Shown here: positions 27,655 through 64,000 of the stretch, piece by piece
Layout: every line of letters begins with the position of its first letter
Numbering within the stretch: the first letter of the stretch is position 1
Assembly: GCA_964035545.1 (NCBI GenBank)
Contig: OZ037766.1
Coordinates: 33,036,773 to 33,100,772 of the forward strand
From: Bugula neritina
Lineage: Eukaryota > Animalia > Bryozoa
Direction of reading: 5' to 3'
DNA: 64,000 bases
The notes under the pieces: model-generated
Seen by the model: the letters and a program-made list of their open reading frames with translations, nothing else
The model's database searches: none
Told to the model about the DNA's origin: nothing
Position numbers and translations under genes: made by a program

Positions 27655-30189
27655 CTAGTAGATAATAGGCTTTTTTATCCCCTTGCCATCCTTCCCTGGG
27701 TGTCCCTAAAATAAAATATAAACTAAAAATAGCAGTTGGAGAAAAAACTCTTTGACATCATTTGATACAATAAAAGTCACAGCATATTAAGATTCACTAC
27801 AGCGAAATACTTTAATCAATACTCTCTAATCAATACTCTCTAATCAATATTCTCTAATCAATACTCTCTAATTAATATTTTCTAATCAATACTTTATAAG
27901 GCTTTAGAGTTTAGACTTTAATTTCATGATCTATCGTGTAGCCAATATGTTTACCTTGTCTCCTTTCATGCCTTTTGGTCCTGGTTTGCCATCTTTTCCA
28001 TCTTTACCATCTTTTCCGGGATGCCCTTTAGCACCTGGCTTTCCATCTTTACCATCTACACCATCATCTCCATCTTTGCCTGGAGCTCCAGTTGCTCCCT
28101 TCATACCTTTAGGTCCAGTTTCACCCTTGACACCCATTTTCCCCTTGCTACCTGGTGCACCAGTATCTCCTTTCATTCCAGTTTCTCCATCTTTGCCATC
28201 TTTTCCATCTTTACCATCTTTACCATTAGCTCCAGTAGCACCAACAGGGCCTGGAGCACCTGTATCTCCTTTCGTTCCAGGTTTACCAGTTTGCCCCTTA
28301 GCACCAGTTGCCCCCTTCATTCCGGTTTCACCATCTTTACCATCTGCGCCATCTTTACCTGGTGCTCCAGTTTTTCCTTTCATGCCTTTTTCTCCAGGGG
28401 CACCTTTTTCTCCATCTTTACCATCTTTTCCAGGGGCTCCTGTATTTCCTTTCATTCCAGTTTCTCCTTGCTCACCCATCTTACCAGTCATTCCTGGTGC
28501 TCCAGTATCTCCTTTCTCTCCTGGTGATCCTGTTGCTCCATCAACTCCATCTTTACCGTCTTTGCCTGGAGCCCCAGTCTTTCCCTTCATTCCTGGTGCT
28601 CCAGTTTCTCCATCGGCTCCATCTTTTCCATCTTTACCTGGTGCTCCAGTTTTTCCTTTCATGCCTGTAGCGCCAGTATCACCTTTCATTCCAGTTTCTC
28701 CTGGAGCTCCCGTATTGCCCTTCATGCCTGTAGCACCAGTATTTCCTTGTGATCCAGTTTCTCCCATAGGCCCGGTTGCACCAACTTTACCCTTCATGCC
28801 ATCATTTCCATCAGATCCTGGTTTGCCAGTAGCTCCAGTTGCTCCGGTTTTTCCTGTGCTACCCATTTTTCCTTTGACACCAGTTGCACCTACACCTCCT
28901 GGTGTACCGTCAACTCCATTTTTTCCTGGTTCTCCCTTTTCACCCTTCATGCCTTGTGGACCTTGCTTGCCTTTGCTTCCTGGTTTACCATCCTTGCCGT
29001 CTTTACCATCTTTACCAGGGTGACCCTTGAGTCCAGCTTTGCCGGGTGGTCCAGTCTTACCAGTATCTCCCTGACAATAAAAATATGGTATTCCTTCAAA
29101 TGATTTAATCTCTTTTGAAAATTAATAGCAATAACTTAGATCAATGCAGTTAGTAAAATGAGACGCTTCTGTCAGCCTACCTTTGGTCCTGGAGGTCCAA
29201 CTGGACATTGGCATTTCTTCACGGGCTTGTAGCTTCTCTTTTCTCTCTAATAACAGAAAGCATTTTAACAATTAAGTGCACAGCTGATAATCTTTTAATA
29301 TTATTTGATGACACACTGGCAAAGCTTGCTATACTACTGGAATTCCCTATACAAAACTAACTACCTGCAGTACATCTGCAGATGTACTGCAGATGTACTG
29401 CAAATTGTACTGCAGATGTACTGCAGATGTACTGCAGATGTACTGCAGATGTACTGCAAATTGTACTGCAGATGTACTGCAGATGTACTGCAGATGTACT
29501 GCAGATGTACTGCAGATGTACTGCAGATGTACTGCAGATGTACTGCAGATGTACTGCAGATTGTATTGCAGATTGTATTGCAGATAGCTACTATATTACC
29601 TACCAGCTGGGCATCTGAGCTGTCGCTAGATAATCTGGCTAGACTCACTTTCAGCTCACCAATTTCCTGGCTTTCCTGAAAGTATATTATTCAGCCGTAT
29701 AGTTGATTGATCAAACAGATGTCACCCAAACCTGATCACTGTGCAGGTTCCTTTACACTTTAGCCTTCAGATTTACAATACACTAAGATAATAGTATATA
29801 AGTATGTTGATATTTTATTGCTCTCTAATGATTTTAATAAAGCCATATATTTGTGCCTAAATGTATAACTAAACTTTCAAATCATATACAAAAAAATTGA
29901 ATGACAATATTACTAAAATATATGAGTTCAATGATGAAGTTTATTAACTTAGAATACAAAAGTTTAACGAGTGAGAGAATCTTCTTATAGTGAGCTACAG
30001 TTCCTGCTAGATGGTATCACTATGTTATGTTAAACTCACCTGGTCAACTCTTTGGTAGATGTAGTTGTAGACGGCCACATTGGCTATGATACTACCTACA
30101 AGGAGGATAGCTAGTAGCCCAGTCGTGTAGCCATAGATCTTTAGTTTAGCTTTGTTAGCAGCCCCCAAGTTGTGGTCTGAACTTTCCAT
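27655..30189 (-). CDS. Type II transmembrane, furin-cleavable collagen A (MACIT/cuticle-collagen-like architecture)
   Basis: Exons: 30189-30040 (MESSDHN..KLKIYGYTTGLLAILLVGSIIANVAVYNYIYQRVDQ, TM), 29675-29604 (ESQEIGELKVSLARL, heptad-like), 29246-29181 (REKRSYKPVKKCQCPVGPPGPK), 29070-27955 (1116 nt, 124 Gly-X-Y), 27705-27655 (GHPGKDGKGIKKPIIY*). All junctions are phase 0. Minus-strand AATAAA at 27597-27592. Confidence 0.88.
29365..29590. repeat. 11-nt gtactgcagat array in a collagen A intron
   Basis: About 20 copies. Confidence 0.92.
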
Positions 30190-34443: not shown

Positions 34444-37400
34444 ATGGACGAGAAATACTCATTGGTTGATGCTGAAACTACCAAAGCTAAGCTAAAGGCT
34501 TATGGGTATACCACTGGCTTCCTCACCATCTTGCTTGTAGGAAGCTTCGTAACAAATGCTATAATATGTTTCCACATGTACCAGCGAGTCACACAAGTAA
34601 GTCATAGCTGTCTTCAAACCATCTTGATAAGTTTTAAATTTGGTGAAAACAAGTATTTGATATAATGTAAGAGAAAACATGTTGAAGATTCTGCACCTAC
34701 ACCATAGTCTAAGTTTACTCTATGTCACAGTCTAAGTTTACTCTATATCACAGTTTAAGTTTACTCTATATTACAGTCTAAGTTTACTCTATATCATAGT
34801 CTAAGTTTACTCTACACCACAGTCTAAGTTTACTCTATATCACAGTCTAAGTTTACTCTATACCACAGTCTAAGTTTACTCTATATCATAGTCTAAGTTT
34901 ACTCTATACCACAGTCTAAGTTTACTCTATACCACAGTCTAAGTTTACTCTACACCATAGTCTAAGTTTACTCTATATCACAGTCTAAGTTTACTCTATA
35001 TCACAGTCTAAGTTTACTCTATATCATAGTCTAAGTTTACTCTATATCATAGTCTAAGTTTACTCTATATCACAGTCTAAGTTTACTCTACACCATAGTC
35101 TAAGTTTACTCTATACCACAGTCTAAGATTACTCTATATCACAGTCTAAGTTTAGTCTATATCACAGTCTAAGTTTACTCTATATCATAGTCTAAGTTTA
35201 CTCTACACCACAGTCTAAGATTACTCTATATCACAGTCTAAGTTTACTCTATACCACAGTCTAAGTTTACTCTATACCATAGTCTAAGTTTACTCTATAT
35301 CACAGTCTAAGTTTACTCTATATCATAGTCTAAGTTTACTCTATATCACAGTCTAAGTTTACTCTATACCATAGTCTAAGTTTACTCTATATCATAGTCT
35401 AAGTTTATACCTACATGCACAGCTTAGACTGTGATCTGAAACAAGTTTATATTATAGTCTGATATTCTAGGAAAGCTCAGAAGTTGACAGTTTGAAGGCT
35501 GCCATTGCACAGTTGGAAACCGCAAACTCAGATGAAGTGATAGTAAGTACAGAAAGAGAATTCCTGGCATATCTATACTAAATCCCACCATATCTATGCT
35601 GAATCCCACCATCTCTATACTGAATCCCACCATCTCTATACTGAATCCCACCATATCTATGCTGAATCTCACCATATCTATACTGAATCCCACCATATCT
35701 ACACTGAATCCCACCATATCTATGCTGAATCCCACCATATCTATACTGAATCCCACCATATCTATGCTGAATCCCACCATCTCTATACTGAATCCCACCA
35801 TCTCTATACTGAATCCCACCATATCTATGCTGAATCTCACCATATCTATACTGAATCCCACCATATCTACACTGAATCCCACCATATCTATGCTGAATCC
35901 CACCATATCTATACTGAATCTCACCATACCTATACTGAATCCCACCATATTTACACTGAATCTCACCATATCTACACTGAATCCCACCATATCTACATCA
36001 ATTATGTAAATAACTATGCGCTACATCAGTGAGTATATTTTAGAGAACAAAGAGAACAGCTTACTTTGATGCTAGCAACTGCTACTGTAAAGCCAAGCCA
36101 GGACCCAAGGTGAGTCATCTATAACCTGTAAGCAATATTTTAGCTTATATAGCATTTTATTTAGAAACATATTGTTACACTGGAAAAGCCTACATAAATA
36201 ATTATTTTTCTAATGTTTATACATTTTTTGATTTGCAAGGCTACATTTTGAGAATTATCAAGGTCTTACAGTAGTTCCTATGCAGTGTAAGTTGGAGTTG
36301 TCTGCTATGTAAATTAGTTGAAATGCTTTGACCTTTCTAGGGACCACCTGGAGATGTTGGAAAACAAGGCAAAATGGGATCAAAAGGAAAACCCGGACAT
36401 CCAGGCAAAGATGGGCTAGACGGTAAACCTGGTATTAAAGGGAAGGTGGGTAAACCTGGGACAAAAGGAATGAAAGGAGAGCCAGGAGATGACGGAGCAG
36501 ATGGAGTTAATGGTGATCCTGGTGCAACGGGTGCCACTGGAATGACTGGAAAAGATGGAGCTAAAGGCGTGTCTGGTGCTACAGGTGTGATGGGGGCTTC
36601 AGGAAAGGATGGATCAAAGGGTATGATGGGAGCCACTGGTGTTATGGGCAAACCTGGAGATGCAGGAGTTGATGGAGAAACTGGAGCTAAAGGAATGACT
36701 GGTAGCAAAGGAGCTCCAGGTAAAAAGGGAGCTAAAGGTGACACTGGTGCTAAGGGCATGGTCGGAGAGCAAGGACCTGATGGCAAGGATGGTGTTGATG
36801 GAGCAAAGGGTGCTATGGGGGCGAAGGGTATGACAGGTGCAACAGGAAAGCCTGGAAATGATGGTGCTGATGGCAAAGACGGTGTAGCTGGTGCCAAGGG
36901 TGCAGTAGGAGATCAAGGAACAAAGGGTAAAACTGGAAAATCAGGCATTAAAGGAGAAAAAGGAATGACAGGTGAACCCGGTGCAAATGGAAAAGATGGA
37001 GATGTTGGTATGACTGGAGCTACTGGTGCTAAAGGCATGATGGGTAAACCCGGTGTAGATGGAAAAGATGGAGCTGATGGAGCTAAGGGAGCAAAGGGCA
37101 TGGCTGGAGCTACTGGCAAAACAGGTGACATGGGTGCCAAAGGTGAAGTAGGGAAACCTGGCCCTGCAGGTGCAACAGGTGCTGCTGGTAAAGATGGCGT
37201 TGATGGAGCTGATGGGAAAGATGGTGCCAAGGGTGCCAAAGGAATGATTGGAGCAACTGGTGCTAAAGGCATGGTAGGGAAACCTGGTGCAACTGGTGAG
37301 CCAGGAGCAAAGGGAGATACTGGAGACAAAGGTACAGATGGTAAAGATGGCTTAGATGGCAAAAATGGTGTTGATGGACCAAAGGGTTCGCCTGGTCATC

Positions 37401-38003
37401 CTGGAAACGATGGTAAAGATGGGAAGCCAGGACCAGCTGGGCCAAAGGGAATGAAGGTATGACTAACAGTATGACTAGCAGTATCACTATCAGTATGACT
37501 ATCAGTATGACTAACAGTATGACTAAAAGTATGACTATCAGTATGACTATCAGTATGACTATAAGCAGTACGACTATTAGTATGACTAACAGTATAACCA
37601 ACAGTATGACTCGCAGTATGACTAACAGTATGACTAACAGTATGACTAACAGTATGACTAACAATATGACTAGCAGTATGACAGGAGTTGCAATAGTTGA
37701 CACTGCTTTGTAAAGTTTAAAAGGTAACATAACATAATTTATATGCTATCTGCTGTGTGTACGTCTGCTGTGTGTATGTCTGCTGTGTGTACGTCTGCTG
37801 TGTGTACGTCTGCTGTGTGTACGTCTGCTGTGTGTACGTCTGCTGTGTGTACGTCTGCTTTATGTATGTCGTCTGCTGCATGCTGTCTGCGTACACTCAG
37901 CCATACTCTGTGTTTGTAGGGGGAGAAAGGACACCCTGGAAAGAGTGGATACTACCAATCTGGAGATTACAAGGGGTCATACGATGATAAGTACGATGAG
38001 TAA
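34444..38003 (+). CDS. Type II transmembrane, furin-cleavable collagen B (paralogue of A)
   Basis: Exons: 34444-34596 (MDEKY..KLKAYGYTTGFLTILLVGSFVTNAIICFHMYQRVTQ), 35471-35542 (ESSEVDSLKAAIAQL), 36044-36109 (RTKRTAYFDASNCYCKAKPGPK), 36341-37456 (1116 nt Gly-X-Y), 37920-38003 (GEKGHPGKSGYYQSGDYKGSYDDKYDE*). Confidence 0.88.
34700..35410. repeat. 23-nt minisatellite agtctaagtttactctatatcac
   Basis: About 30 copies in a collagen B intron. Confidence 0.95.
35570..35998. repeat. 21-nt minisatellite atactgaatcccaccatatct
   Basis: About 20 copies. Confidence 0.95.
37457..37683. repeat. 12-nt gtatgactaaca array beginning at the splice donor
   Basis: About 19 copies; the first unit is the donor GTATGA. 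Confidence 0.92.
37750..37860. repeat. 15-nt tctgctgtgtgtacg array
   Basis: About 7 copies. Confidence 0.88.
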
Positions 38004-44331: not shown

Positions 44332-47300
44332 ATGGATGAGAAAGGAGAGCTCAGATGCTCCAGCCGGTCTGTGGTAAGAGCTCATAGTTTTGGAATAATC
44401 TCCCTTTCCGTGTTCTTTATTGGACTGACTATAGTCAACGTCATTGTCTACCATCAACAGCATACGGTAAGCTTTAAATTATTGCATTTCAAAATAATAT
44501 ACAATCAAAACGTAATGCTTTTACTGAAGCAAATTGACTTTATTTTTACATTGGATTTTGATATAAATTTTTATATAGTGTTTCTTTTTATAGTATTTCT
44601 CAAACAGCAATTTTTTATTAAAACTAATTTATTTTAATTGTGTGAAAAATCTATAATCTTCATATCAGAGATTTAAAATATTTTTCTGCAGGAAATAGAT
44701 GAGTTACGAAGTTCCTTAAACAGTCTGAAATCACTCTACGCAGGGAACAACATGGTGAGTAACTATTCAGGAAGTTGATATGGTAACCATGGTAATGCAC
44801 ATTGCAATAGATATTAATGACTCACAAATGGACTACTTAGGCTTTAAACTTCTCTCACCTTGTAACCAAGGAAGAGTTGAGAGTTTAAAGAGCAAATTAA
44901 GTTTATCTTTTCTTCTATGTTCATAGAAATCCAAACAACTGTCACCAGCTTTTCATGTCAAGGTGTTTCAAAACAATTCCTTACAAGCTATGCATCTTTG
45001 AAATCTTAAAAAATTTGAATTATCTTTCTTTAGCTATTGCTAGCACTTCGAGTGCTCTTAATTTTTGGAAAGAAGCCAACATATTCCTCAATAAAAGAAA
45101 AGATGTTTCAGATTAGAAGCTTATAGAATACCATTGTTATTCATATGGTAATATTTCATGTGTAGTATTTATATTAGCAGAGAGTAAAGAGAAGTGCTAC
45201 AGGGTATGGTTACGCTGGTAGCAGATATGGCACAACCCAAGCACCTGCATGCACCTGCCCACCAGGTCCAAGGGGCTTCCAAGGACTCCCTGGACCTAAA
45301 GGAGAGAAGGGAGATACTGGAACTGCAGGTTATGGGTATCCTGGCGCAAAGGGAGATAAAGGAGATACTGGTCTTCCAGGTTTGAATGGAGTTGATGGAC
45401 ATCCAGGGTCTGTGGGAGCAACTGGAGTAGCTGGACAACGAGGTAAAGCTGGATACACTGGAGCTACTGGTGCTACAGGTGTTACTGGAGACGATGGCGT
45501 AGATGGTACACCAGGTATGAAGGGAATGAAAGGACAAGTTGGTGCAGTTGGTTATCCTGGAGCTCCAGGTAAAGATGGACATAATGGTGTAAAGGGAGAT
45601 TCAGGAGAAACTGGTGCACCAGGAGCAACTGGAATGAAGGGAGAAAAGGGAGAAATTGGACATTCTGGCTATGCTGGTCAAGATGGGTACAATGGCAAAG
45701 ATGGAGCACCGGGTGCACCTGGACTTGATGGGGCACCAGGTTTACCTGGAAAAGATGGCACACCTGGTATGAAGGGAGATCGTGGTGAAAGAGGATATAT
45801 GGGAGAAACCGGAGAACAAGGGTTACCAGGCGAAGCTGGCTATTCTGGAGCACCAGGTGCGAAAGGCGAACCGGGTCAGATGGGTGATAGAGGTTACAAT
45901 GGACAACCAGGAGAGCCAGGGCTTCCAGGTGCACCTGGTCTTGATGGAGCTGACGGTAAAGATGGATACAATGGTGCTCCAGGAATTAAAGGTGAACAGG
46001 GAGAGCCAGGACAAAGCGGAGAGCCTGGCAAAGATGGTTATAACGGAGAACCTGGTGAGCGAGGTGAGCCTGGATACCCTGGATCTATGGGTGCTACAGG
46101 TGCACCCGGTGCTAGTGGAGCACCTGGATTGCCAGGTGAAACAGGAGCTCCTGGAAAAGATGGCTATAACGGTTTACCCGGTGCCGATGGGACACCAGGT
46201 GAAGATGGCACACCTGGATACCCAGGAAAAGATGGGGAAGCTGGCGCTACCGGACCCAGAGGATATGCTGGTGAAAAAGGTGCTTCCGGTATGAATGGAC
46301 TGCCAGGTGCACCAGGTCTTAATGGGAAAGACGGTCTTCCTGGAGCTCCAGGTATGAAGGGAGAATCAGGAGCAGCTGGAGTACCAGGAGAGACTGGACA
46401 ACAAGGCGCGAATGGCTACAATGGACTCGATGGTAAAACTGGAGCCCCAGGTGAACGAGGAGAGCCCGGTTACCCTGGAGCTGATGGACAACCAGGGGCA
46501 CCAGGTATGAAAGGAGAGAGAGGTGAAAATGGCTACAACGGACTGCCAGGTGAAAATGGCTACAATGGTGCTAAGGGAGAAGCTGGAGCCTCAGGAAAAG
46601 ACGGCACTCCAGGTATACCTGGTTTAGATGGAGCTCCTGGTCTGAATGGTGAGAAAGGAGACAAGGGAGATGTCGGAACACCCGGCCGAGATGGATATGA
46701 TGGGCGAGATGGTGAAACTGGTGCCCCCGGAGCAAATGGGGAACCCGGAAAAGATGGTGCTACTGGACCATCCGGAATGACTGGAAGACCAGGAATGAAT
46801 GGAAAAGATGGGGCTCCAGGAATGAAAGGAGATGCTGGTATGCCAGGTGAAAAAGGTGCATCTGGGTCACCTGGTCAAAATGGTTACAATGGAGAGGATG
46901 GAGAGCCAGGTTTACCTGGAGTAGATGGGCGTCCTGGTGCAACTGGAGAGAAGGGAGAGCCAGGTCCGAGAGGATACACTGGTGCTCCTGGGGAGTCGGG
47001 AGTCAATGGCTATGACGGATCAGATGGTAGCCCAGGTTACAATGGCAAAGATGGAGCACCAGGCATGAAGGGAGATACTGGAGCACCTGGACCTAAAGGT
47101 TTACCAGGAGCTCCAGGAAGAGACGGTAAAGATGGTGAAATGGGTGCTCCAGGGTACAACGGAGCACCAGGATCACCAGGAATGAAAGGAGAAGCTGGAT
47201 ACCCAGGATCTCCTGGATTACCTGGAGCTCCAGGTGAAACTGGTGCACCTGGTGCTCCTGGGTACAACGGTTTACCAGGAAATAATGGTGCCACCGGATT

Positions 47301-48045
47301 ACCTGGAATACAGGGTCCAAAGGTGAGTTATCACTTTATGGTGTATTCATGGGAACCAGATTTTAGTAACCAAAACACAGATTTGAGCAACAAAACTACA
47401 GAATGATATAATCAACAAGTAATAATAGTATAATAATATTATCACTCATTACAAATAGTATATGTCTTTGAAGTTATCATTCTGCTATTTATTTAAGGGT
47501 GAGCCAGGGCAAGTGGGTGCAACAGGATACTCAGGCTTACCTGGTGCACCAGGAGCTCCTGGAAAAGATGGTAAAATGGGAGCCCCAGGCTACAACGGAG
47601 CACCAGGAATGAAAGGAGACTCTGGACATCCAGGAGCTCCAGGTGAAACTGGTGCAACTGGTAAGCCAGGATACAACGGGTTACCAGGAACTGATGGTGC
47701 AACCGGACATCCAGGCGCACAGGGACCAAAGGTGAGTTTCAACAATATCCTGCTTGCTTAAACCACACAATGTGTTTTGTTGCAATAAGTGGATCGTTGT
47801 GTAGCTGTTACTAATAAAGTCGTTGTTGTATTTTATTGTTACATTATGATATTGTAATACTGCTGTTACTTAATTAGGGAGCACCAGGCTCACCCGGAGC
47901 ACCCGGAGCACCAGGAGCAACGGTAGCACCCGGCTCTGGTACACTAAAAGGAAGCACAACTCCCAACACAGGGTATGGCTATAAGTACAGTAGAATGTAC
48001 GGGAATTACTGGGTACCAACTCCCTCTAACAACTATGGCTACTAG
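44332..48045 (+). CDS. Type II transmembrane, furin-cleavable long Tyr-rich collagen C
   Basis: Exons: 44332-44466 ([30 protein letters not shown]), 44692-44754 ([12 protein letters not shown]), 45181-47322 ([18 protein letters not shown] then Gly-X-Y; TAGCAG tandem acceptor), 47498-47731 (26 triplets), 47878-48045 (..[24 protein letters not shown]). Confidence 0.88.
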
Positions 48046-48889
48046 CAACAGGCAACTAGCTACTAGCTACTAGCAGTTAGCAACTAGCTACTAGATATTA
48101 GCAACTAGCTACTATAAGTACTAGCTACTGGATACTATCAACAGTAGTGAAATACAACTTATAAGTGTATTTTATGCAAGTTTAGATATATGTACATAAT
48201 TACTCTGTTTCAATCAGCTGGTCTGTAAATTCTTATTTTACTCCATCATCAGTTCCGAATCATATCGTGATTATGCAACTTTTGCTACAAGCTGGGAACT
48301 TTACCATGTAGAAATTATCACAGATCTAATAATTTTTTATAAAATATTTTAATAAAAGAAAAAACAGCTTTTTATATTCCTCAATATTACTAAAATATTT
48401 TGGTCATTTTGATTCTATTTTTTAAAGAATTGCTTTGTGAAATATTTGAATTGATAAAAATGAGGAAGTTATATTTTATTTAAGACAAGCATTAATGCCA
48501 TTGCACTGTCTTTTCTTTTATTATGTTGGTTTGTTATGTTTATATTGTAAGCCAAATTTTGCCTTAATCAAATGCTCAATCATGTTACATTAAACATTGC
48601 TAATGCTACACCATTATCATCGTCATTTATGACAGGGATGTTAAATAAATAATTATAATATTATACTTTTCTGCTCAGTTTTATCAAACTCACAGCTGCT
48701 AAGCTCTTATGATAGATTGGTAATAGAAAAGCGTTCACTTAGCTAACATGAAATCATGTTGATGTGGGTGTTATTTTGGAACTAAAAGTAACAATTATTA
48801 CGGCAGAATTTAATCAATATGTAAGTCATAGCAATAGGAGAGCAAAATGACTCGTTAATGTCTGCTAGAGACCACATGATACTAGTAGA

Positions 48890-49843
48890 AGTCACATGAT
48901 GCTAGTAGAAGTCACATGATGCTAGTAGAAGTCACATGATACTAGTAGAAGTCACATGATGCTAGTAGAAGTCACATGATACTAGTAGAAGTCACATGAT
49001 ACTAGTAGAAGTCACATGATACTAGTAGAAGTCACATGATACTAGTAGAAGTCACATGATGCTAGTAGAAGTCACATGATACTAGTAGAAGTCACATGAT
49101 GCTAGTAGAAGTCACATGATACTAGTAGAAGTCACATGATACTAGTAGAAGTCACATGATGCTAGTAGAAGTCACATGATGCTAGTAGAAGTTACATGAT
49201 GCTAGTAGAAGTCACATGATGCTAGTAGAAGTCACATGATGCTAGTAGAAGTCACATGATGCTAGTAGAAGTCACATGATACTAGTAGAAGTCACATGAT
49301 ACTAGTAGAAGTCACATGATACTAGTAGAAGTCACATGATACTAGTAGAAGTCACATGATACTAGTAGAAGTCACATGATACTAGTAGAAGTCACATGAT
49401 GCTAGTAGAAGTCACATGATACTAGTAGAAGTCACATGATGCTAGCAGAAGTCACATGATACTAGTAGAAGTCACATGATGCTATAGTAGAAGTCACATG
49501 ATACTAGTAGAAGTCACATGATGCTAGGAGAAGTCACATGATACTAGCAGAAGTCACATGATGCTAGTGGAAGTCACATGATGCTAGGAGAAGTCACATG
49601 ATATTAGTAGAAGTCACATGATACTAGTAGAAGTCACATGATGCTAGTAGAAGTCACATGATACTAGTAGAAGTCACATAATACTAGTAGAAGTCACATG
49701 ATACTAGTAGAAGTCACATGATGCTAGTAGAAGTCACATGGTACTAGTAGAAGTCACATGATGCTAGCAGAAGTCACATGATACTAGTAGAAGTCACATG
49801 ATGCTATAGTAGAAGTCACATGATACTAGTAGAGTCACATGAC
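48890..49843. repeat. 20-nt minisatellite gtcacatgatRctagtagaa
   Basis: About 47 copies. Confidence 0.97.
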
Positions 49844-52370: not shown

Positions 52371-52469
52371 GGATAGTTAGCTACAGAGGTCATTGGCAGA
52401 GCTGTATCTAGCTACAGAGGTCATTGGCAGAGTTGTATCTAGCTACAGAGGTCATTGGCAGAGTTGTAT

Positions 52470-55400
52470 CTAGCTACAGAGGTCATTGGCAGAGTTGTAT
52501 CTCAGTGTTTTATCAGCACATGTAGAGAACAGTAGAAAGTGTATTCTCTCTCCTCTGGTATTTGGTCTAGCTTCAACAGTCCTGGAAAATATACACAGTA
52601 AATGCTTATATAGCAAACTATACTATATACTAACAGTGACAACTAAAATCTAATATTATACATTCTCGCAGAATTGTATTACTTTATTTTTTTAACTTAA
52701 TTGTGTATTTTACTATAAAATTATTAGCTGTTCAACAAAACTATAGAGAAAAACATTACCTGTGTAACTTCATAAATGGACACTTTAAGAAACAGGCAAC
52801 TCACCTATTTCTGGGTGCCTGAAACTTAACATTTGAGTATTCTGTCTCGTGACCAACCAGTCTCTCTCAGTTCATCTCTTAGTTTATCAGGAACTTCCTT
52901 AGTGGCTACAGAGAAGGTCTTGTCAGTTGGCCAATAGACTGTCAGTTCATTATTCTTACACGTATACCAAGTTTCTATCTCAGAAGACATGTTGCATTCT
53001 AAATAAAATACAAAAATATTCTATTTTAAATGCTGATGACATTATTTTTGTTTCTTTACAAATAATAATACAACAACAATAAAGTTACCATGAGCACAGA
53101 TTGTTTGAAGGTGTCTCTTTTGCTGAGATATGGAAGGTATCAGGAACTCTCTGTTGTATGCATTCTTCACAAGCTGACAAAAAACATCATATCTACTCAC
53201 AAACATCAGTCTCCTTACTATCGGTGACTCTGTATGTAAATATAAATAAAACACAGGATATAATGTGATCTTTGTTTATAATGCAAATAGGAAGTATTTT
53301 ACTTTAATTTGAATGACCATGCATGACCATATACAGCATAATCAAAATCCCAAGTATATAACAGCATGAACTTATATAGTTAAAACTAATAATATGCTAA
53401 TAAATATATTAACATTGTACCACATGATTACTCAATTCTTCATCTTAGCAGAAGTTCTATAATGATGACCTTTATTTGGGTTTTTCTCAGATATGTTTGT
53501 TGAATTGACCAAATAGGTAAAGTAAATTAAGCTATAAAGTTGAGGAAAATACATTTTCATTTAAGTTTATTAAAATCATGACTTACTCAAAACATTGATG
53601 TCGTAGACAGAACACTGTATAAAGAACTTGTGACTTCCTTCAGAAAGATATGCTGTGGAGGAACATCCTGGTAAAGTGTAGTTAGTCTTACTCTGTCCTG
53701 GATCCAAGTATACGGTCACATTATGTGGCCCGCAGATACCCGAACCTGTATGTTGAAAATAATTTCCTGACTATAGTTCTAATGTGACATAATTTGCAAA
53801 CATTTAGATGTAGCTGTGATTGATTATAAAATGATTTAGTATGTATTCTATTTATAAGTATATGTATTCTATGTATATGTATTCTATGTATACGTATTCT
53901 ATATATGTATATTTAGTCTATGTATATGTCTTCTATATTCTCACCACTCAACTTGTAGATACCTTTACTCCCCATACCAACATACACATCCTCTCCTACT
54001 TTCAGTATAGACACTGGATTGTCTGGTAATTGAGAGCTGATTGTACAGGAAGTCTCTTCATCAAAACACACAGGACCTACTTGTTTACTATTCAAATCTA
54101 ATAGTCTGAGTACCTTATTATGATAATCAGCAACAAGATACATGTTGTACCCAACTCTTGTTATTCCTGAAGGATAATAAAACCTCGATGTATTGAAACT
54201 TCCATCAATATAACCATGAGATAATGAACCTGCTAGTTTAATGTTTATAACAGATCCATCGTCACCCCAACTGACCTGAGATATATAATTAGTATTAATC
54301 ACTAGTAACTTGTTGTCAGCCCAAACTACATACTTAGGCTGTCTGAAACCTGAGTTAATAACAGTACTCAGTTCTCCTGTATGAAGGTCTACAGATCTCA
54401 GTGCATGGTTATTGTTATCAGTAACTAACAACCTGTCTGGGCTTCTAACATCTATCTCAATACCATGAGGGTAATACAGTCTACCAGTACCTACTCCACC
54501 CTCAACATACCCTCTACTACCACATGTCCCTGCTAAGGTACGTAAGCTGTTATCTACTCTGTTTAACATCTTAATACAATGCTGGGAAGAACCTGCTACA
54601 GCTACATGAGTTTTATTCACTTGTTTAAACCCTGCAATATAACTTGACAGAATAGTTGCTAGAGTTGTAGGAGTTGTCCCATCTGTAGTTAGAAGGTATT
54701 TCCAGGTACTAAACATGATACTCCCATCATCTCTGTACAGGTCCAGCTCCATGTGGAGAATGATCTTATCTGTGTTAAGGAATAGTTCTGGTTTGTTGAA
54801 TGAAACACTAAAAGTAAGTTAAACTGGTTCAACCATTTCTGAGTAGGAATGTTTTATTTTTGACTAAAATTTATTCAAACAAAATATAATATAAAGTGTT
54901 GTTATTCAAGATCACTCAATACCCTAATTTGCACTAAATGTGTGTATCAAGTGTGTCAATTAGTCTGATTATTATCTTAGTGTTTTATAAAAGAATTACG
55001 ACCTTCTTTGTCTAACTTAAACTTTATGCTTTGCTTCATTTCCAGCCAAAAATGTTATAACATCCAAAAATATATATAAATTTACTTCTATTTAAATTTA
55101 TACTATCTAAATTGCTTTGCTTATAGTGCATGTTTATAAATTTAAGCATTTAAAAATGTGTTACATTAAAACTGTAATCATACGCAGTAAATTTAAGTCA
55201 ATAAACTTGGGCTCAGGAGTTGACTGTAGAAGAAACAGGGATGGAAGGGAAAGAGATGGGGGGGGGGGAGATAGAGGTTAACAAAGTTGAAAAATCACAG
55301 AGCAAACAAAAGGTGACTTTACCTTGAGGTCTGACAATCCATCAGTTTGAGTAGTGCTACTAGAATCTACAATATAAAGTGATGTGATCTGATCACAAAT

Positions 55401-56753
55401 AAATGTCTGCTTCACTTTTGTACACAGCAAGATACTGCAGGGAGCAATTACTCCACTGCTTTCTCAATAAAATATTTCATTATATTGTGTAACAATTATT
55501 TCTTCTAAATCTAATAACAGACACTTATAGTAGCCATAACAGGTGTATAATTATGTGATGTAATAATTAGTTATAATAATTAGTTATAATAATTAGTCAT
55601 ATATACTATAAATAAATACTTACAATCAATCCAGAGTAAGATGCCATTCTCATCTTCTGTTACTCTGTAGTCAACAAATATAAGATCCGTTTTACTTACT
55701 TCTGTGTGAAGCAGTTGGAGTTATATAAATCAGTATAAAATATCACTGACCCTTAGGGGAAAGGCAAGCTACTAGTACAGTGTGAGTACTAAGTTCAACT
55801 GCCACTTCTTATATATGAGATCCAAATCAGAACCACATGCAATAGTATCTATTATAGCTGACCAAGTATATCTGTTTTCCTGTGCATTTACAAATACTTA
55901 TATTCAATATTCAACAGGAATTGCCCTGCAAAATTCTTCAATAGCTTTTCCAACTAGAAAGAAATGTTATTAATACACAAAATTCCCATCTTTACTAATC
56001 TCATCACACAATGGTTATCCAACTCACAAGATATGTGGGGTAAACAAGGCACATGCAAGTATGTCTTTTAGCAGCTGCTGTTATTGTACGTGAGAGGTTT
56101 GTTGAGCTGTGAGGGGCAGACAACTTTAAATTAGAAATCTCACTTTAGAAATAATGTGTTTATTACTGGATTATATTATTTGTGTGTTGAACAACTGCAA
56201 CAGAAGTACCAAAAGTAACAATAATATTTCTGTATCATTTATTATGAAACTACATAATACAATGTAAACTACACAGTATATTGTATAGTGTGTATACATA
56301 TTATTATATAATACAATGTAAACTACACAGTATATTGTATAGTGTGTATACATATTATTATATAATACAATGTGAACTACATAGTATATTGTATAGTGTG
56401 TATACATATTACTATATAACACAGTGTAAACTACACAGTATATTGTATAGTGTGTATACATATTATTATATAACACAATGTAAACTACACAGTATATTGT
56501 ATAGTGTGTATATATTATTATATAATACAGTGTAAACTACACAGTATATTGTATAGTGTGTATACATATTATTATATAACGTAGTGTAAACTACACAGTA
56601 TATTGTATAGTGTATATACATAGTTTATTCATAAATTTAATATAAAGAATATATACTATAGGCTACTATATATAATATTTTAATATAGTATGAATAATAT
56701 CTCATGGTATGTATTCAGATACTCACAATAAAGTACAAATACTGTCCCATCAT
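52470..56753 (-). CDS. Secreted NHL-like beta-propeller protein, copy 1 (2-nt frameshift near the 3' end)
   Basis: Exon 1 is either 56753-56727 (MMGQYLYFI) or 55653-55624 (MRMASYSGLI). Then 55366-55323 (ILVALLKLMDCQTS, rest of signal peptide), 54807-53945 (NHL-like motifs LAGTCG..G.VEG, LYYPHGI..LLVTDNNNHALRSVD, FYYPSGI..YLVADYHNKVLRLLD), 53745-53587, 53229-53089, 52998-52805, 52581-52470. As read, a premature TAA falls at 52828-52826. Confidence 0.75.
56250..56622. repeat. ~55-nt minisatellite (also at 62410-62700)
   Basis: tgtaaactacacagtatattgtatagtgtgtatacatattattatataa units in both duplicate copies. Confidence 0.9.
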
Positions 56754-59146
56754 CTCCTTCTGTTATTATGTAATACTGTTTTTATTCCTGCTACTCTTAC
56801 TCAATATACTGAAATAAAGTTTATACTTCCTATATACTTCTCATATGTGTGATATGTTTATATAGAAACCAGTCACATGACAATTGATCAACTCAATACA
56901 TGATAAACAGAGCAGATATTTACAGAACCAGAGATATTAGGAGCAGGAAACAGAGTCCTGGATACAAATGTGTTTTAGTTGGGTGTCTGACATGCTGTCT
57001 GGCGGTATGTCAGCATGTTAGTATGTTAGTATGTTAGTATGTTAGTATGTCAGTATGTCAGTATGTCAGCATGTCAGCATGTTAGTATCTTGTGTGTTTA
57101 TCATATTGTGACTTTTAAAGTAAGATTTGCAAGCAAATATTTATATAATTTTAAACTTATATATTTATTTTATATAATCAGAAGCTGACCAAAGGTTTGC
57201 TGACAGTAAACCTAGACCTGAGAAGACATGGACTAAGCTACAACATCTGGTACTGAGTATGTTATGTAGAAAGTAGGGAAGGAATTTGTGTTGTGATTGA
57301 ATTACGTACGCTGATTGAAGACAGACTCTGTGTCAGATTTCTAGTTATGGTGAAACACATCACCTGATAATAAACTTATGTTGACCTTGACATGTGAAAG
57401 ATAGAGTATAGAGGACTTACTCATATAATATAATCTGTATTCAGGAGGCATATAATTTATCTAGTAGTGAATTTAGTGCAGATGTACTGGCATATATAAC
57501 ATACAGTGTATAGTATACATCCACAGAATATTAACTATTGTAACAATGTTAAAATGCAGAGATGTAACTTGTTAATATTATCCCCAGGAATGATTGTTGA
57601 TAACTTAATTAAATCAGAGCACCTGGATTATCACTGTATTTATACATGTTTAGTTTATTAAGGTAAAGGTGTCAAATATTTATTCAATCATGTGCAGGTA
57701 TAAATAATTTGATTCAATTTGACTCCAAAATGTTCCAATAATTATCAGAATTTATCACAGCTGAGACTTGTTAGACTACCATGTTGCAATAACTTGGTAA
57801 ATAAATATACTGTGTATGACAGCTACAATATGTTATTCAATGTTCTTTAGCTATTAGTTCCTATATATAGTCATTTATGTATACAAGATGGCTGTGTGTA
57901 TATTATATGATGTAATGTATACAACATGGCTGTGTGTATATTATATGATGTAATGTAATTTGATGTGAGAATAAAGTTTCTGATAGATCAAAGGATAAGA
58001 TAAATATTTTCTACTTTATCAGAAATATCCCCGTTTTAAACAGGATTCATGTCATGTGACAGACAGAGCTTGTGTTCTATCATCTTATTAAAGACAGGCA
58101 TAGCCTGTGTTCTATCATCTTATTAAAGAAAAATACAATAGCAGCTGTAGGCATCATTTCTATGTCATTAGAACACAGTTTATATCTGTGACTCCCAAAT
58201 GTTTATAGTGCAATGTTTTTATGTATAAACTTTAATACTGCTTGTTTATTTTATTGAAAACTCAAATTTCAACTCTTAAATATTTAACAGAAAGATGTCA
58301 TGCCAGATGCTTCTCTGTTTACTGCAGTGTCACTCAAAACAGTTTGATTTCCAGCCCCCCTCCCCCTTTACTACTACAAAGTATATCAATATTATGTAAC
58401 TCTACTATCTGTAATTGCCTGTGGATGTAGTATATTTAATTCAGTTTTAGTTTGTTAGAAAGTAATACTTTCTTAAACTAATCAGATATTGATATTTTAT
58501 AACTAGTCAGTATCATTAAGATATAAACTGAAACAAAGAAGTAGTTCAACAGGAAACTAGTGGAGTATTTTTAACACTGACATTCAGCAAAGGCAATTTA
58601 TTCATGATGGTAGTATCATGGGTATACAAACCAATGTTATTCTTTGACTCTTTATTGATTATCATATCAAAAACAAGTTCTGTGAAAAGCTACTATAGTA
58701 TTATACTAAGTCATAATATTCTAATTATATAGTAAACAATACAATATTTTTACAATAGTATAATTTGTTGTTAAAGCTAATTAAGTATGAAAACAAGCCT
58801 TCAATTTGAGTTATTTACATCGTCTACTTTCTCACATGCAGAGTAACTCACTTGAAATATTTACCGAGAATTGCAAAAAAAAGGAAAATAAGGTGAGTTT
58901 GATCTCGTTAAGGTATGCATTGTAATTTTGTTAGTATACATGCAGCTGCTAAAATGAACTCATACAATAGTAAAATATTTGGCAGAAAGCTTAGGGCTAT
59001 TTATTAAATGATTTAGTTTGTTTTTTATTTTAATCTTTTGCTGAATATATGTCAGCCATGTTAAACTGATGTCTCCAGTGAAAGTTAGTGACAGAGGTCA
59101 TTGGCAGAGTTGTATCTAGCTAAGGAGGTCATTGGCAGAGTTGTAT

Positions 59147-62100
59147 CTAGCTACAGAGGTCATTGGCAGAGTTGTATCTCAGTGTTTTATCAGCACATGT
59201 AGAGAACAGTAGAAAGCGTATTCTCTCTCCTCTGGTATTTGGTCTAGCTTCAACAGTCCTGGAAAATGTACACAGTAAAGGCTATAGCAAGCTGTACTAT
59301 ATATAGAAACAGTGACAACTCAAATCTAATACTTACATTCTTGCAGAATTTTATTACCTTATTTTTGTAACTTGATTGTGTATTTTATTATAAAATTATT
59401 AGCTGTTCAACAAAACTATAGAGAAAAACATTACCTGTGTAACTTCATAAAAGGAGACTTTAGGAAACAGGCAACTCACCTATTTCTGGGTGCCTGAAAC
59501 TTAACATTTGAGTATTCTGTCTCGTGACCAACCAGTCTCTCTCTCAGTTCATCTCTTAGTTTATCAGGAACTTCCTTAGTGACTACAGAGAAGGTCTTGT
59601 CAGTTGGCCAATAGACTGTCAGCTCATTATTCTTACACCTATACCAAGTTTCTATCTCAGCAGACATGTTGCAGTCTATAAACAAAATACAAAGATATTC
59701 TATTTTAAATGCTGATGACATTATTTTTGTTTATTTACAAACAATAATACAACAACAATAAATCTACCATGAGCACAGATTGTTTGAAGGTGACTCTTTT
59801 GCTGAGATATGGAAGGTATCAGGAACTCTCTGTTAAATGCATTCTTTACAAGCTGACAAGAAACATCATATCTACTCACAAACATCAGTCTCCTTACTAT
59901 CGGCGACTCTGTATGTAAATATAAATAAACATTGGATATAATGTGATCTTTGTTTATAACACAAATAGGAAGTATTCTACTCTACTTTGAATGACAATGC
60001 ATGACCATATACAGCATAATCAAAATCCCAAGTATATAACAGCATGAACTTGTATAATTAAAACTTATAATATGCTAATAAATGTATTAACATTGTACCA
60101 CATGATTACTCAATTCTTCATCTTAGCAGAAGTTCTATTATGCTGACCTTTATTTGGTTTCTCCTCAAATATATTTGTTGAATTGACCAAATAGGTAAAG
60201 TAAATTAAGCTATATAAAGTTGAGGAAAATACATTTTCATTTAAGTTTATTAAAATTAAAAAGTCATGACATACTCAAAACATTGATGTTGTAGACAGAA
60301 CACTGTATAAAGAACTTGTAACTTCCTTCAGAAAGATATGCTGTGGCATAGGAACATCCTGGTAAGGCGTATGTGGTTGTACTCTGTCCTGGATCCAAGT
60401 ATACAGTCACATTATGTGGCCCACAGATATCTAAACCTGTTTGTTGAAAATAATTTCCTGACTATAATAAACTTACTTAGAAGTTGACATAGATAATATT
60501 CATAAATTGGTCTTTGGATAAACTTAGTTAGCAGATACAGTGTGTTCTCATGCAAATATTTACAATACAGTAGCTAAGTTCTAATGTGACATAATTTACA
60601 GACATTTAGATGTAGCTGTGATTGATTTTGAAATGATTATTAGTATGTATTCTATGTATACGTATTCTATGTATATGTTTTCTATGTACTTACCACTCAA
60701 CTTGTAGATACCTTTACTCCACATACCAACATACACATCCTCTCCTACTTTCAGTAGAGACACTGGATTGTCTGGTAATTGAAAGCTGATTGTACAGGAA
60801 GTCTCTTCATCAAAACACACAGGACCTACTTGTTTAATATTCAAATCTAACAGTCTGAGTACCTTATTATGATCAGCAACAAGATACATGTTGTACCCAA
60901 CTCTTGTTATTCCTCTAGGCCAGAAAAACCTGGATGTATTGAAACTTCCATCAACATAACCAGGAGATACTGAACCTGCTAGTTTAATGTTTGTAACAGA
61001 TCCATCGGCACCCCAACTGACCTGGGATATGTAATGGCTATTACTCACTAGTAACTTGTTGTCAGCCCAAACTATATTCCTAGGATATCTGAAACCTGAG
61101 TTAATAACAGTACTCAGTTCTCCTGTGTGAAGGTCTACAGATCTCAATGCATGATTAAATTCATCAGTAACTAACAACCTGTCTGGGTTTCTAACATCTA
61201 TCTCAATACTATCAGGTTTATTTAGTCTACCGGTACCTACTCCACCCTCAACATACCCTGTACTACCACATGTCCCTGCTAAAGTACGTAAGCTGTTATC
61301 TACTCTGTTTAACATTTTAATACAATGCTGGGAATAATATACTACAGCTACATGAGTTTTATTCACTTGTTTGAACCCTGCAAAAAAAATTGACTGAATA
61401 GTTGCTAGAGTTGTAGGAGTTGTCCCATTTGTAGTTTGAAGGTATTTCCAGGTTCTAAACATAATACTCCCATCATCTCTGTACAGGTCCAACTCCATGT
61501 GGTAAATAGGCTTTTCAGTGTTAAGGAATAGTTCTGGTTTGTTGAATGAAACACTGAAAGTAATTTAAACTGGTTAAACCATTACTGAGTGGGAAATTTA
61601 ATTTTTGACTAAAATTCATTCAAACAAAATATAATATACTGTATTGTTTATTCAAGATCACTTTATACCTTAATTTGCAATAAATGTATTTTCTGCCATA
61701 TATTCTACTCATTACGTTATAGAAGATTATTCTCTTAGTGTTTTATAAAAGAATTACGGCCTTCTTCATTTAATTATGTTTTATGCTTTATGCTTCATTT
61801 TCAGCCAAAAATGTTTTAGAATCCAAACTGGCAAAAATATAAATAAATTTGCTTATTCTATAAAAAATTTATAATCTCTAAATTGCTTTGCTTATAGTGC
61901 ATGTTTATAAATTTAAGCGCTTAAAAGTGTGTTACATTAAAACTGTAATCAACTGTAGATCAACTGAAAATTTAAGTCAATAAACTTGGGGTCAGAGGTC
62001 GATTGTAGAATAACAGGGGTGGAAGGGAAGGAGATGGGTGGAGGGAGATGGAGTTTGACAAAGTTGAGTAATCACAGAGCAAACAAAAAGTGACTTTACC

Positions 62101-62875
62101 TTGAGGTGTGACAATCCATCAGTTTAAAGAGTGCTACTAGAATCTACAATATAAAGTGATGTCATCTGATCCCAAATAAATGTTTACTTCACTTTTGTAC
62201 ACAGCAAGATACAGGAAGTAAGGACTCCACTGCTTTCTCAACAAAATATTTCATTATATTGTGTAACAATTATTTCTTCTAAATCTAATAACAGACACTT
62301 ATAGTAGTCATAACATGTATAATTATGTGATGTAATAATTAGTTATAATAATCAGTTATATATACTATAAATAAATACTTACAATCAATCTAACGCTCTT
62401 TTATAATAATATAGTGTGTATATATATTATTACCTATATAACACAGTGTAAACTACACAGTATATTGTATAGTGTGTATATATATTATTATATGACACAA
62501 TGTGAACTACATAGTATATTGTATAGTGTGTATACATATTATTATATAATACAGTGTAAACTACATAGTATATTGTATAGTGTGTATACATATTATTATA
62601 TAACACAATGTAAACTACATAGTATATTGTATAGTGTGTATACATATTATTATATAACACAATGTAAACTACATAGTATATTGTATAGTGTGTATACATA
62701 GTTTATTCATAAATTTAATATAAAGAATATATACTATAGGCTACTATATATAATATCTTAATAGAATCTAAAATACTGATAGGTATAAATTACCTTCTAC
62801 CTAAATATAGTATGAATAATATCTCATGGTATGTATTCAGATACTCACAATAATGTACAAATACTGTCCCATCAT
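59147..62875 (-). CDS. Secreted NHL-like beta-propeller protein, copy 2 (intact reading frame)
   Basis: Exons: 62875-62849 (MMGQYLYII), 62143-62100, 61553-60694, 60436-60275, 59908-59768, 59675-59480, 59258-59147 (..RYNSANDLCS*). Phases are consistent throughout. Confidence 0.78.
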
Positions 62876-64000
62876 CTCCTTCTGTTATTATGTAATACTA
62901 TTGTTATTCCTGCTACTCTTACTCAATATACTGAAATAAAGTTTATACTTCTTATATATACTTCTCATATGTGTGATATGTTTATATAGAAACCAGTCAC
63001 ATGACAATTGATAAACTCAAGACATGATAAACAGAGCAGATATTTACAGAAACAGATATTAGGAGCAGGAAACAGAGTCCTGGATACAAATGTGTTTTAG
63101 TTGGGTGTCTGACATGCTGTCTGGCAGTGTGTTAGTATGTCAGCATGTTAGTATGTTAGTATGTTAGTATGTTAGTATGTCAGTATGTCAGTATGTCAGC
63201 ATGTCAGCATGTTAGTATCTTGTGTGTTTATCATATTGTGACTTTTAAAGTAAGATTTGCAAGCAAATATTTATATAATTTTAAACTTATATATTTATTT
63301 TATATAATCAGAAGCTGACCAAAGGTTTGCTGACAGTAAACCTAGACCTGAGAAGACATGGACTAAGCTACAACATCTGGTACTGAGTATGTTATGTAGA
63401 AAGTAGGGAAGGAATTTGTGTTGTGATTGAATTACGTACGCTGATTGAAGACAGACTCTGTGTCAGATTTCTAGTTATGGTGAAACACATCACCTGATAA
63501 TAAACTTATGTTGACCTTGACATGTGAAAGATAGAGTATAGAGGACTTACTCATATAATATAATCTGTATTCAGGAGGCATATAATTTATCTAGTAGTGA
63601 ATTTAGTGCAGATGTACTGGCATATATAACATACAGTGTATAGTATACATCCACAGAATATTAACTATTGTAACAATGTTAAAATGCAGAGTTGTAACTT
63701 GTTAATATTATCCCCAGGAATGATTGTTGATAACTTAATTAAATCAGAGCACCTGGATTATCACTGTATTTATACATGTTTAGTTTATTAAGGTAAAGGT
63801 GTCAAATATTTATTCAATCATGTGCAGGTATAAATAATTTGATTCAATTTAACTCCAAAATGTTCCAATCTATCACAGAATCTATCAAAGCTGAGACTTG
63901 AAAGACTACCATGTTGCAATAACTTGGTAAATAAATATTCTGTGTATAACAGCTACAATGTGTTATTTAATGTTCTTTAGCTACTTGTTCTTATATAGTC

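Follow-up and report, generated by a model that had tools for sequence, protein, structure and literature searches.

Why do two neighboring copies of a gene differ mainly on the face that is expected to bind a ligand? The question arises from a 64,000-nucleotide stretch of Bugula neritina chromosome 2 (assembly tzBugNeri2.1, GCA_964035545.1; contig OZ037766.1, forward-strand positions 33,036,773 to 33,100,772; hereafter the window), which carries a tandem pair of minus-strand genes, copies A and B, each predicted to encode a six-bladed NHL propeller behind a putative signal peptide. A first-pass annotation of the window, made from its letters alone, had proposed that the pair represents a diversifying recognition system. 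The variable face is very probably a selected recognition surface, and on balance we favor, though only slightly, the reading that these genes encode inherited, diversified secreted recognition proteins driven by microbe recognition.

The duplicated unit extends over approximately 52400-57870 (copy A) and 59090-64000 (copy B) at 86-93% identity. Both propeller exons, whose annotated coordinates (A, 54807-53945; B, 61553-60694) proved exact, are open and have AG/GT borders. They differ by 40 amino acids and one codon indel over 287 columns, so the earlier figure of about 38 in some 270 residues was of the right order but not exact, and every cluster of residue changes that had been listed is present. 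The top face of NHL propellers is formed by the b-c and d-a loops, which constitute the ligand face of Brat and the active-site face of PAL (PMC4015489). Following the annotation's own rule, a top set of 60 positions was defined as P-3 to P+2 of the six P-x-G motifs together with D to D+3 past strand b, and a bottom set of 46 loop positions was read off the strands of the predicted model. The 60 top-face positions contain 26 of the differing positions (Fisher p=2e-10), confirming the proposed concentration of changes on this face. Over the propeller exon, copies A and B show a nonsynonymous rate (dN) of 0.079 and a synonymous rate (dS) of 0.094, giving a dN/dS of 0.83.

Selection was analyzed with our own codon site models (M0 gave -3318.57, against -3318.61 in IQ-TREE), with posteriors from naive empirical Bayes, in three sets of sequences: nine local copies, these nine plus five copies from a Joint Genome Institute (JGI) Bugula sample, and nine chromosome 7 copies that are about 54% identical to copy A. 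The comparison of M1a with M2a yielded likelihood ratio test (LRT) values of 155 for the local copies (omega2 7.3, 10.8% of sites), 292 after addition of the JGI copies (omega2 8.0), and 214 for the chromosome 7 copies (omega2 11.8), placing about 10% of codons at an omega of 7-12 across the three sets; the M7/M8 and M8a/M8 tests concur. Among sites with a posterior of at least 0.95, 12/16, 17/21 and 18/20 belong to the top set (p 2e-6, 1e-9 and 8e-12, respectively), whereas the bottom loops contain no selected site in any of the sets. The selected sites outside the top set lie in d-a loops (53, 98 and 197) or on a strand (39). Eleven sites are common to the two subfamilies (15, 74, 98, 112, 131, 197, 210, 213, 229, 263 and 265; p 2e-9). 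The positive selection suggested by the annotation is therefore found at the variable top-face sites, whereas the exon as a whole, with a dN/dS of about 0.8-1.0, shows no excess. Up to 15 different residues occur at the selected sites among 30 paralogues, and these sites are rich in tyrosine (19% versus 3% elsewhere) and in aromatic residues generally (33% versus 10%).

A count made without a tree gave a top-face dN of 0.29-0.41, which is 2.3-4.1 times the whole-exon dS (bootstrap intervals above 1.5), as compared with a ratio of 0.3-0.6 for non-top codons; for A against B alone, the ratio of top-face dN to whole-exon dS is 3.0 (1.6-5.9). Relaxed constraint on exposed loops, acting together with gene conversion or local hypermutability, might generate such clusters without any selection, and several observations are in keeping with this: the whole-exon dN/dS is 0.77-1.0, conversion is real, top-face codons have a higher counted dS (0.17-0.25), the fit improves when double-nucleotide changes are allowed, and copy A is broken. 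Because top-face dN is only 1.2-2.2 times the counted dS of the top codons themselves, multi-hit and hotspot nulls were tested directly. The LRT still reaches 88-165 when double and triple changes are allowed, and a fast neutral class representing a mutation hotspot is rejected (p 1e-5, 8e-7 and 2e-8), with no raised synonymous rate needed for the fast codon class. In 42 runs of simulated conversion without selection the LRT never exceeded 20, whereas the same pipeline gave 154 for the real data. Moreover, the bottom loops are equally exposed but have a dN/dS of 0.3-0.6, and identical sites recur in an independent subfamily at about 54% identity. The strong signal of positive selection on top-face sites thus survives the multi-hit, hotspot and simulated-conversion nulls, and the selection-free reading is largely refuted, retaining a very small probability.

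The fold that presents these sites was modeled with AlphaFold using 30 paralogues, which predicted 24 strands in six four-stranded blades (predicted local distance difference test score, pLDDT, 95). Its closest folds are SOQ1 (7djl, Z 29.5) and human NHLRC2 (6g7w, Z 29.2), with a root-mean-square deviation of 2.3-2.4 over about 265 residues; a family profile matched the same two proteins (E 1e-21 and 1e-15, respectively) and also TRIM71, and Atlas comparisons gave template modeling (TM) scores of 0.82-0.84 to NHL/TEN_NHL clusters. With Pfam NHL (PF01436 clan), copy A reached 22.5 bits over one repeat (cut-off 20), and copy B had no match at E<=1. Propeller enzymes of the lactonase, lyase or strictosidine-synthase-like kind share the fold at Z 22-27, and the PAL active site lies on the top face (PMC4015489), which would suit diversified secreted enzymes with changing substrate pockets. 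However, across 98 family sequences the top-face positions conserved at 85% or more comprise only the NHL consensus P, D, N and F; His/Glu and other polar residues outside this consensus are not conserved on the face, and the best fold and profile matches are SOQ1 and NHLRC2, making an enzymatic role highly improbable.

The gene models bear on the proposed secretion. Copy B is modeled with seven coding exons encoding 513 amino acids. Exons 1-2 encode a hydrophobic leader of 24 residues, exon 3 by itself the propeller, exon 4 a linker of 53 residues and exons 5-7 the six-Cys tail. The features of the two copies are as follows.

56727..56753, minus strand: copy A exon 1, putative start of the signal peptide, 94-98% conserved in L003, L007, L008 and L037
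55323..55366, minus strand: copy A exon 2, remainder of the signal peptide
53945..54807, minus strand: copy A exon 3, the whole six-bladed NHL propeller, 287 codons, open
53587..53745, minus strand: copy A exon 4, short Cys-containing linker module
53089..53229, minus strand: copy A exon 5, start of the six-Cys tail domain
52805..52998, minus strand: copy A exon 6, 194 bp, frameshifted, 2 bp short in the GA run at 52857-52873
52470..52581, minus strand: copy A last exon, out of frame past the lesion
55600..56260, minus strand: extra sequence of about 660 bp in copy A intron 1, absent in B and 95% identical to L006
57010..57720, minus strand: near-identical tract upstream of copy A, probable gene conversion
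63140..63850, minus strand: upstream partner of this tract in copy B; other array members 92-96%
62849..62875, minus strand: copy B exon 1, putative start of the signal peptide
62100..62143, minus strand: copy B exon 2
60694..61553, minus strand: copy B exon 3, NHL propeller, 286 codons, open
60275..60436, minus strand: copy B exon 4, linker module
59768..59908, minus strand: copy B exon 5, six-Cys tail domain
59480..59675, minus strand: copy B exon 6, 196 bp, intact
59147..59258, minus strand: copy B last exon with stop, its frame kept in distant paralogues and in the transcript-derived P0063

P0063, 520 aa long, comes from a contig of run SRR4125604 that contains no introns, and its propeller is 91% identical to that of a member on chromosome 7. 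Its alignment with copy B extends to the last Cys, providing independent confirmation of the architecture, and the lack of introns in the contig indicates that transcription and splicing occur in a Bugula sample for at least one member of the family. In the copy models and P0063, only the 24-residue hydrophobic leader precedes the propeller. The family protein has six N-glycosylation sequons, 14 Cys and a hydrophobic leader, which was judged a signal peptide by inspection. Past the leader, the highest 19-residue hydropathy of copy B is 0.8, with no transmembrane segment or second hydrophobic stretch, and neither copy B nor P0063 has a membrane span or a hydrophobic C-terminal tail. The family proteins are therefore probably secreted. 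Database queries consisted of single exons or P0063, while the joined gene models served for frame checks and one pairwise alignment.

The six-Cys tail found no relatives among PDB sequences, Pfam, Atlas or the protein database, and its single-sequence model was uninformative (pLDDT 39, best Z 6.7). Assignment to FAS1 (PF02469) was rejected, since the score was 13.4 bits against a cut-off of 22 and 3/15 members matched at E 0.045-0.09. One guess is that the tail may join propellers into oligomers or tether them to a cell. The linker exon 4 of copy B had no Pfam match; linker modules differ even between close copies, with a second, longer type in L005, L008, L012 and L038, and L004 has a long intron 3. 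The intron 1 insert of copy A, shared with L006, has a 76% match on chromosome 8; the insert contains short exon-like pieces and is perhaps a captured gene fragment. An alternative first exon at 55664-55624 is possible on paper but lies within this insert, found only in A and L006, and is unsupported.

Exon 6 has an intact length of 196 bp in the family. The lesion in copy A leads to a stop at 52826-52828 and a protein ending at 468 aa. Among the nine local copies, the 2-bp deletion in the GA run is confined to A and L002, the copy after next; both have open propeller exons, and L002 also matches copy A at 97% in intron 2. An assembly error is unlikely, given that L002 has the identical lesion and that tzBugNeri2.1 is a HiFi assembly with a quality value of 53.7 (PMC11480708). 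Copy A might still yield a functional shortened protein, or it might be decaying and serve as a donor of loop variants.

Divergence between A and B is patchy, amounting to 13% in intron 2 and in the 5' flank, 8% in intron 3 and 6% in intron 4, and is lowest toward the 3' coding end (exon 6, 3%; last exon, 1%). The near-identity of the upstream block, which the annotation had used as a measure of neutral divergence, is even closer than reported (one difference in 711 bp, rather than about two). The block occurs at full length only 5' of array members, at 92-96% identity except in the A/B pair, and is therefore the gene's own 5' region, lately made identical, most simply by gene conversion. This distribution rules out a transposon, and use as a neutral baseline is ruled out because divergence elsewhere in the non-coding DNA of the duplication is 1-13%. 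The annotation had named a conversion tract with otherwise neutral divergence as evidence against selection; such a tract was found, but neutral divergence elsewhere was not. Recombination among copies is also significant (pairwise homoplasy index, PHI, p=0.0005) and stays so when the selected codons are removed or third positions are used; four significant identical tracts are shared between copies, although the signal is weak in the chromosome 7 set. On these sequence comparisons, gene conversion is real, with copies swapping segments.

In the searched genome (216,009,554 bases in 321 pieces), a search with the propeller exon gave 80 matches at E<1e-40, of which three contain stops and one is split, and tail exon 6 was matched at 69 loci, consistent with a family of about 70-95 genes, chiefly on chromosomes 2 and 7 with members on others too. 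Copies A and B form the end of a tandem array in which four or more additional copies follow within 35 kb, and three further close copies lie within 180 kb; the nine local copies are 80-88% identical in the propeller and 89-100% in exon 6. The first-pass annotation had overlooked this larger array and the family of 70 or more genes, as well as the tail frameshift of copy A and the exchange of segments. Taking all 135 propeller matches as the family was rejected, because those on chromosome 8 are 22-30% identical and have no tail-exon match; about 35 such weak matches lie at 7.63-8.73 Mb of that chromosome. A remoter tandem subfamily on chromosome 2 (24.67-24.85 Mb) has propellers of 30-37% identity and the same tail exon.

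The JGI Bugula sample is 81-84% identical at one orthologous locus, and its copies were accordingly rejected as alleles and assigned to a separate lineage. This lineage has copies of its own for each of the two recent expansions; they are 83-87% identical to the local clade, and one-to-one orthologues are absent. Remoter relatives with 25-50% identity occur on marine metagenome contigs, and one scan of metagenome contigs found nothing. The remaining matches of the wide search are bacterial multi-repeat NHL proteins, which reflect repeat similarity and are no evidence of transfer. The literature search returned nothing on bryozoan NHL proteins or on the propeller family, and this putatively secreted family is apparently undescribed.

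A changing living partner is the usual cause of repeated selection on one binding face. The top face of these proteins probably binds a ligand that changes or is diverse, and this ligand may well be microbial. Each gene would yield a soluble protein in which a rigid six-bladed propeller offers its top face as the binding surface, followed by the small Cys-rich tail. Gene number would grow by tandem duplication, while gene conversion would homogenize the frame and reshuffle loop segments. Positive selection would alter approximately 20-25 top-face residues, often to Tyr, Trp or His, such that copies bind different or changing ligands. If the ligand is carried by pathogenic, fouling or symbiotic bacteria, the protein could act as a pattern-recognition protein, an agglutinin or an opsonin. 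Several points weigh against this microbial reading or the evidence beneath it. The selection analyses cover the best 30 matching paralogues at most, and the assignment of faces follows the order of secondary structure in the predicted topology rather than coordinates. NF-kB-type sites were not found above chance. The spliced transcript represents P0063 and not A or B themselves, and copy A is truncated in its tail. Finally, dN/dS of the tail among close copies is near 1 (0.049/0.050, 88 codons), which means that it is homogenized rather than shown to be constrained among them.

The same face might instead serve in allorecognition or in the recognition of kin or gametes, marking or reading conspecific identity at colony contact, larval settlement or fertilization. 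Loci of this kind typically show positive selection on one surface. However, the proteins have no membrane anchor, members are found on chromosomes 2, 7 and others instead of at one locus, and the measured variation is that between paralogues; a soluble family spread over many loci is easier to reconcile with microbe recognition than with a classical locus for allorecognition or for gamete recognition. Bryozoans do show allorecognition, with the underlying genes listed as unknown in a 2011 review (PMC3342096). We regard a role of this kind as improbable. Secreted effectors or binding proteins directed at competitors, predators, food particles, biofilm cues or the settlement surface, and not at infecting microbes, would be expected to leave an equal signature of selection; the predicted secretion is consistent with them, as is the biology of a sessile suspension feeder with substrate-choosing larvae, and large selected secreted families are typical of effector or venom-like families. 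Domain and sequence searches found no toxin or enzyme domain, and the top face lacks invariant catalytic-type residues beyond the NHL consensus, making effectors a rather unlikely, if credible, explanation. Beyond microbe recognition by this one family lies a broader speculation of low probability, namely that cheilostome non-self recognition is built on NHL propellers, with a secreted arm formed by this family and an intracellular TRIM-NHL arm, each varying on the same face, and not on Ig, LRR or lectin domains; the secreted arm would then determine specificity for microbes, including the bryostatin-making symbiont, or serve allorecognition.

Comparison with known systems shows that the family belongs to the NHL propeller fold but lies outside TRIM-NHL, NHLRC2/SOQ1, teneurins and propeller enzymes. 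SOQ1 and NHLRC2 share the six-bladed fold with long Gly-rich d-a loops, but they are single conserved genes with 16-18% identity to the Bugula family, which has no thioredoxin-like domain, is predicted to be secreted and comprises many copies under positive selection. Teneurins differ from the 513-520 aa Bugula protein, which has no membrane span, EGF repeats or YD shell, and PAL, SMP-30 and strictosidine synthase differ in that the Bugula top face has no invariant catalytic or metal-binding residues. TRIM-NHL proteins (Brat, TRIM71, TRIM2) resemble it in fold (Z 21-26) and in the use of the top as ligand face (PMC4015489), whereas the Bugula family has no RING, B-box or coiled coil, is predicted to be extracellular, and has a variable, not conserved, top face.

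Among expanded or variable secreted recognition proteins of invertebrates, snail FREPs, bivalve C1qDC proteins, amphioxus VCBPs and horseshoe crab tachylectins are comparable cases. Their binding domains are FBG in FREPs, which diversify somatically, C1q in C1qDC and Ig-V in VCBPs, and tachylectins are secreted beta-propeller lectins of the tectonin type; no sequence match to any of these four groups was found. Hydractinia Alr1/Alr2 and Botryllus fuhc/fester are similar as hypervariable extracellular proteins of colonial invertebrates encoded in tandem arrays, but these are mainly membrane proteins encoded at a single complex and were defined through crosses and allelic polymorphism, unlike the Bugula proteins, which are predicted to be soluble and have genes on several chromosomes. 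Sea urchin SpTransformer (SpTrf, Sp185/333) genes form a clustered multigene family with near-identical flanks, segment sharing and some pairs with dN/dS >1, and their products are immune-induced and bind pathogens (PMC8634487). The Bugula family resembles SpTrf as an expanded tandem multigene family with selection on a putative binding surface and exchange between copies, but it is unrelated in sequence and consists of folded propellers with site-specific omega of 7-12. A tandem array combined with conversion and a selected binding face follows a logic well known from other invertebrate families. These results suggest that the NHL propeller, familiar chiefly as a conserved module that binds RNA or proteins inside the cell, can also act as a binding scaffold that is secreted and variable. 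They provide a candidate set of 70 or more genes, with about 25 selected residues mapped on one face, and the alternate haplotype GCA_964035465.1 is already in the public archive.

Further features lie elsewhere in the window and at another locus. Protein kinase exons occupy 144-25640 (plus strand; Pkinase match at 144-446), with introns full of short tandem repeats, and reading of the translated exons points to a MAP4K4/MINK/TNIK (misshapen)-type gene with a C-terminal CNH region. Beside the array lies a collagen cluster of single-exon Gly-X-Y stretches at 27931-28950 (minus), 36374-37462 (plus) and 45382-47406 (plus), of 339, 362 and 674 aa (PF01391). Between the collagen gene and the NHL array, a 60-bp tandem repeat of about 16 units extends over 48873-49842. 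At a separate locus, L032:3670-4100, there is a 420-bp repeat resembling a miniature inverted-repeat transposable element, with inverted ends and dozens of genome copies.

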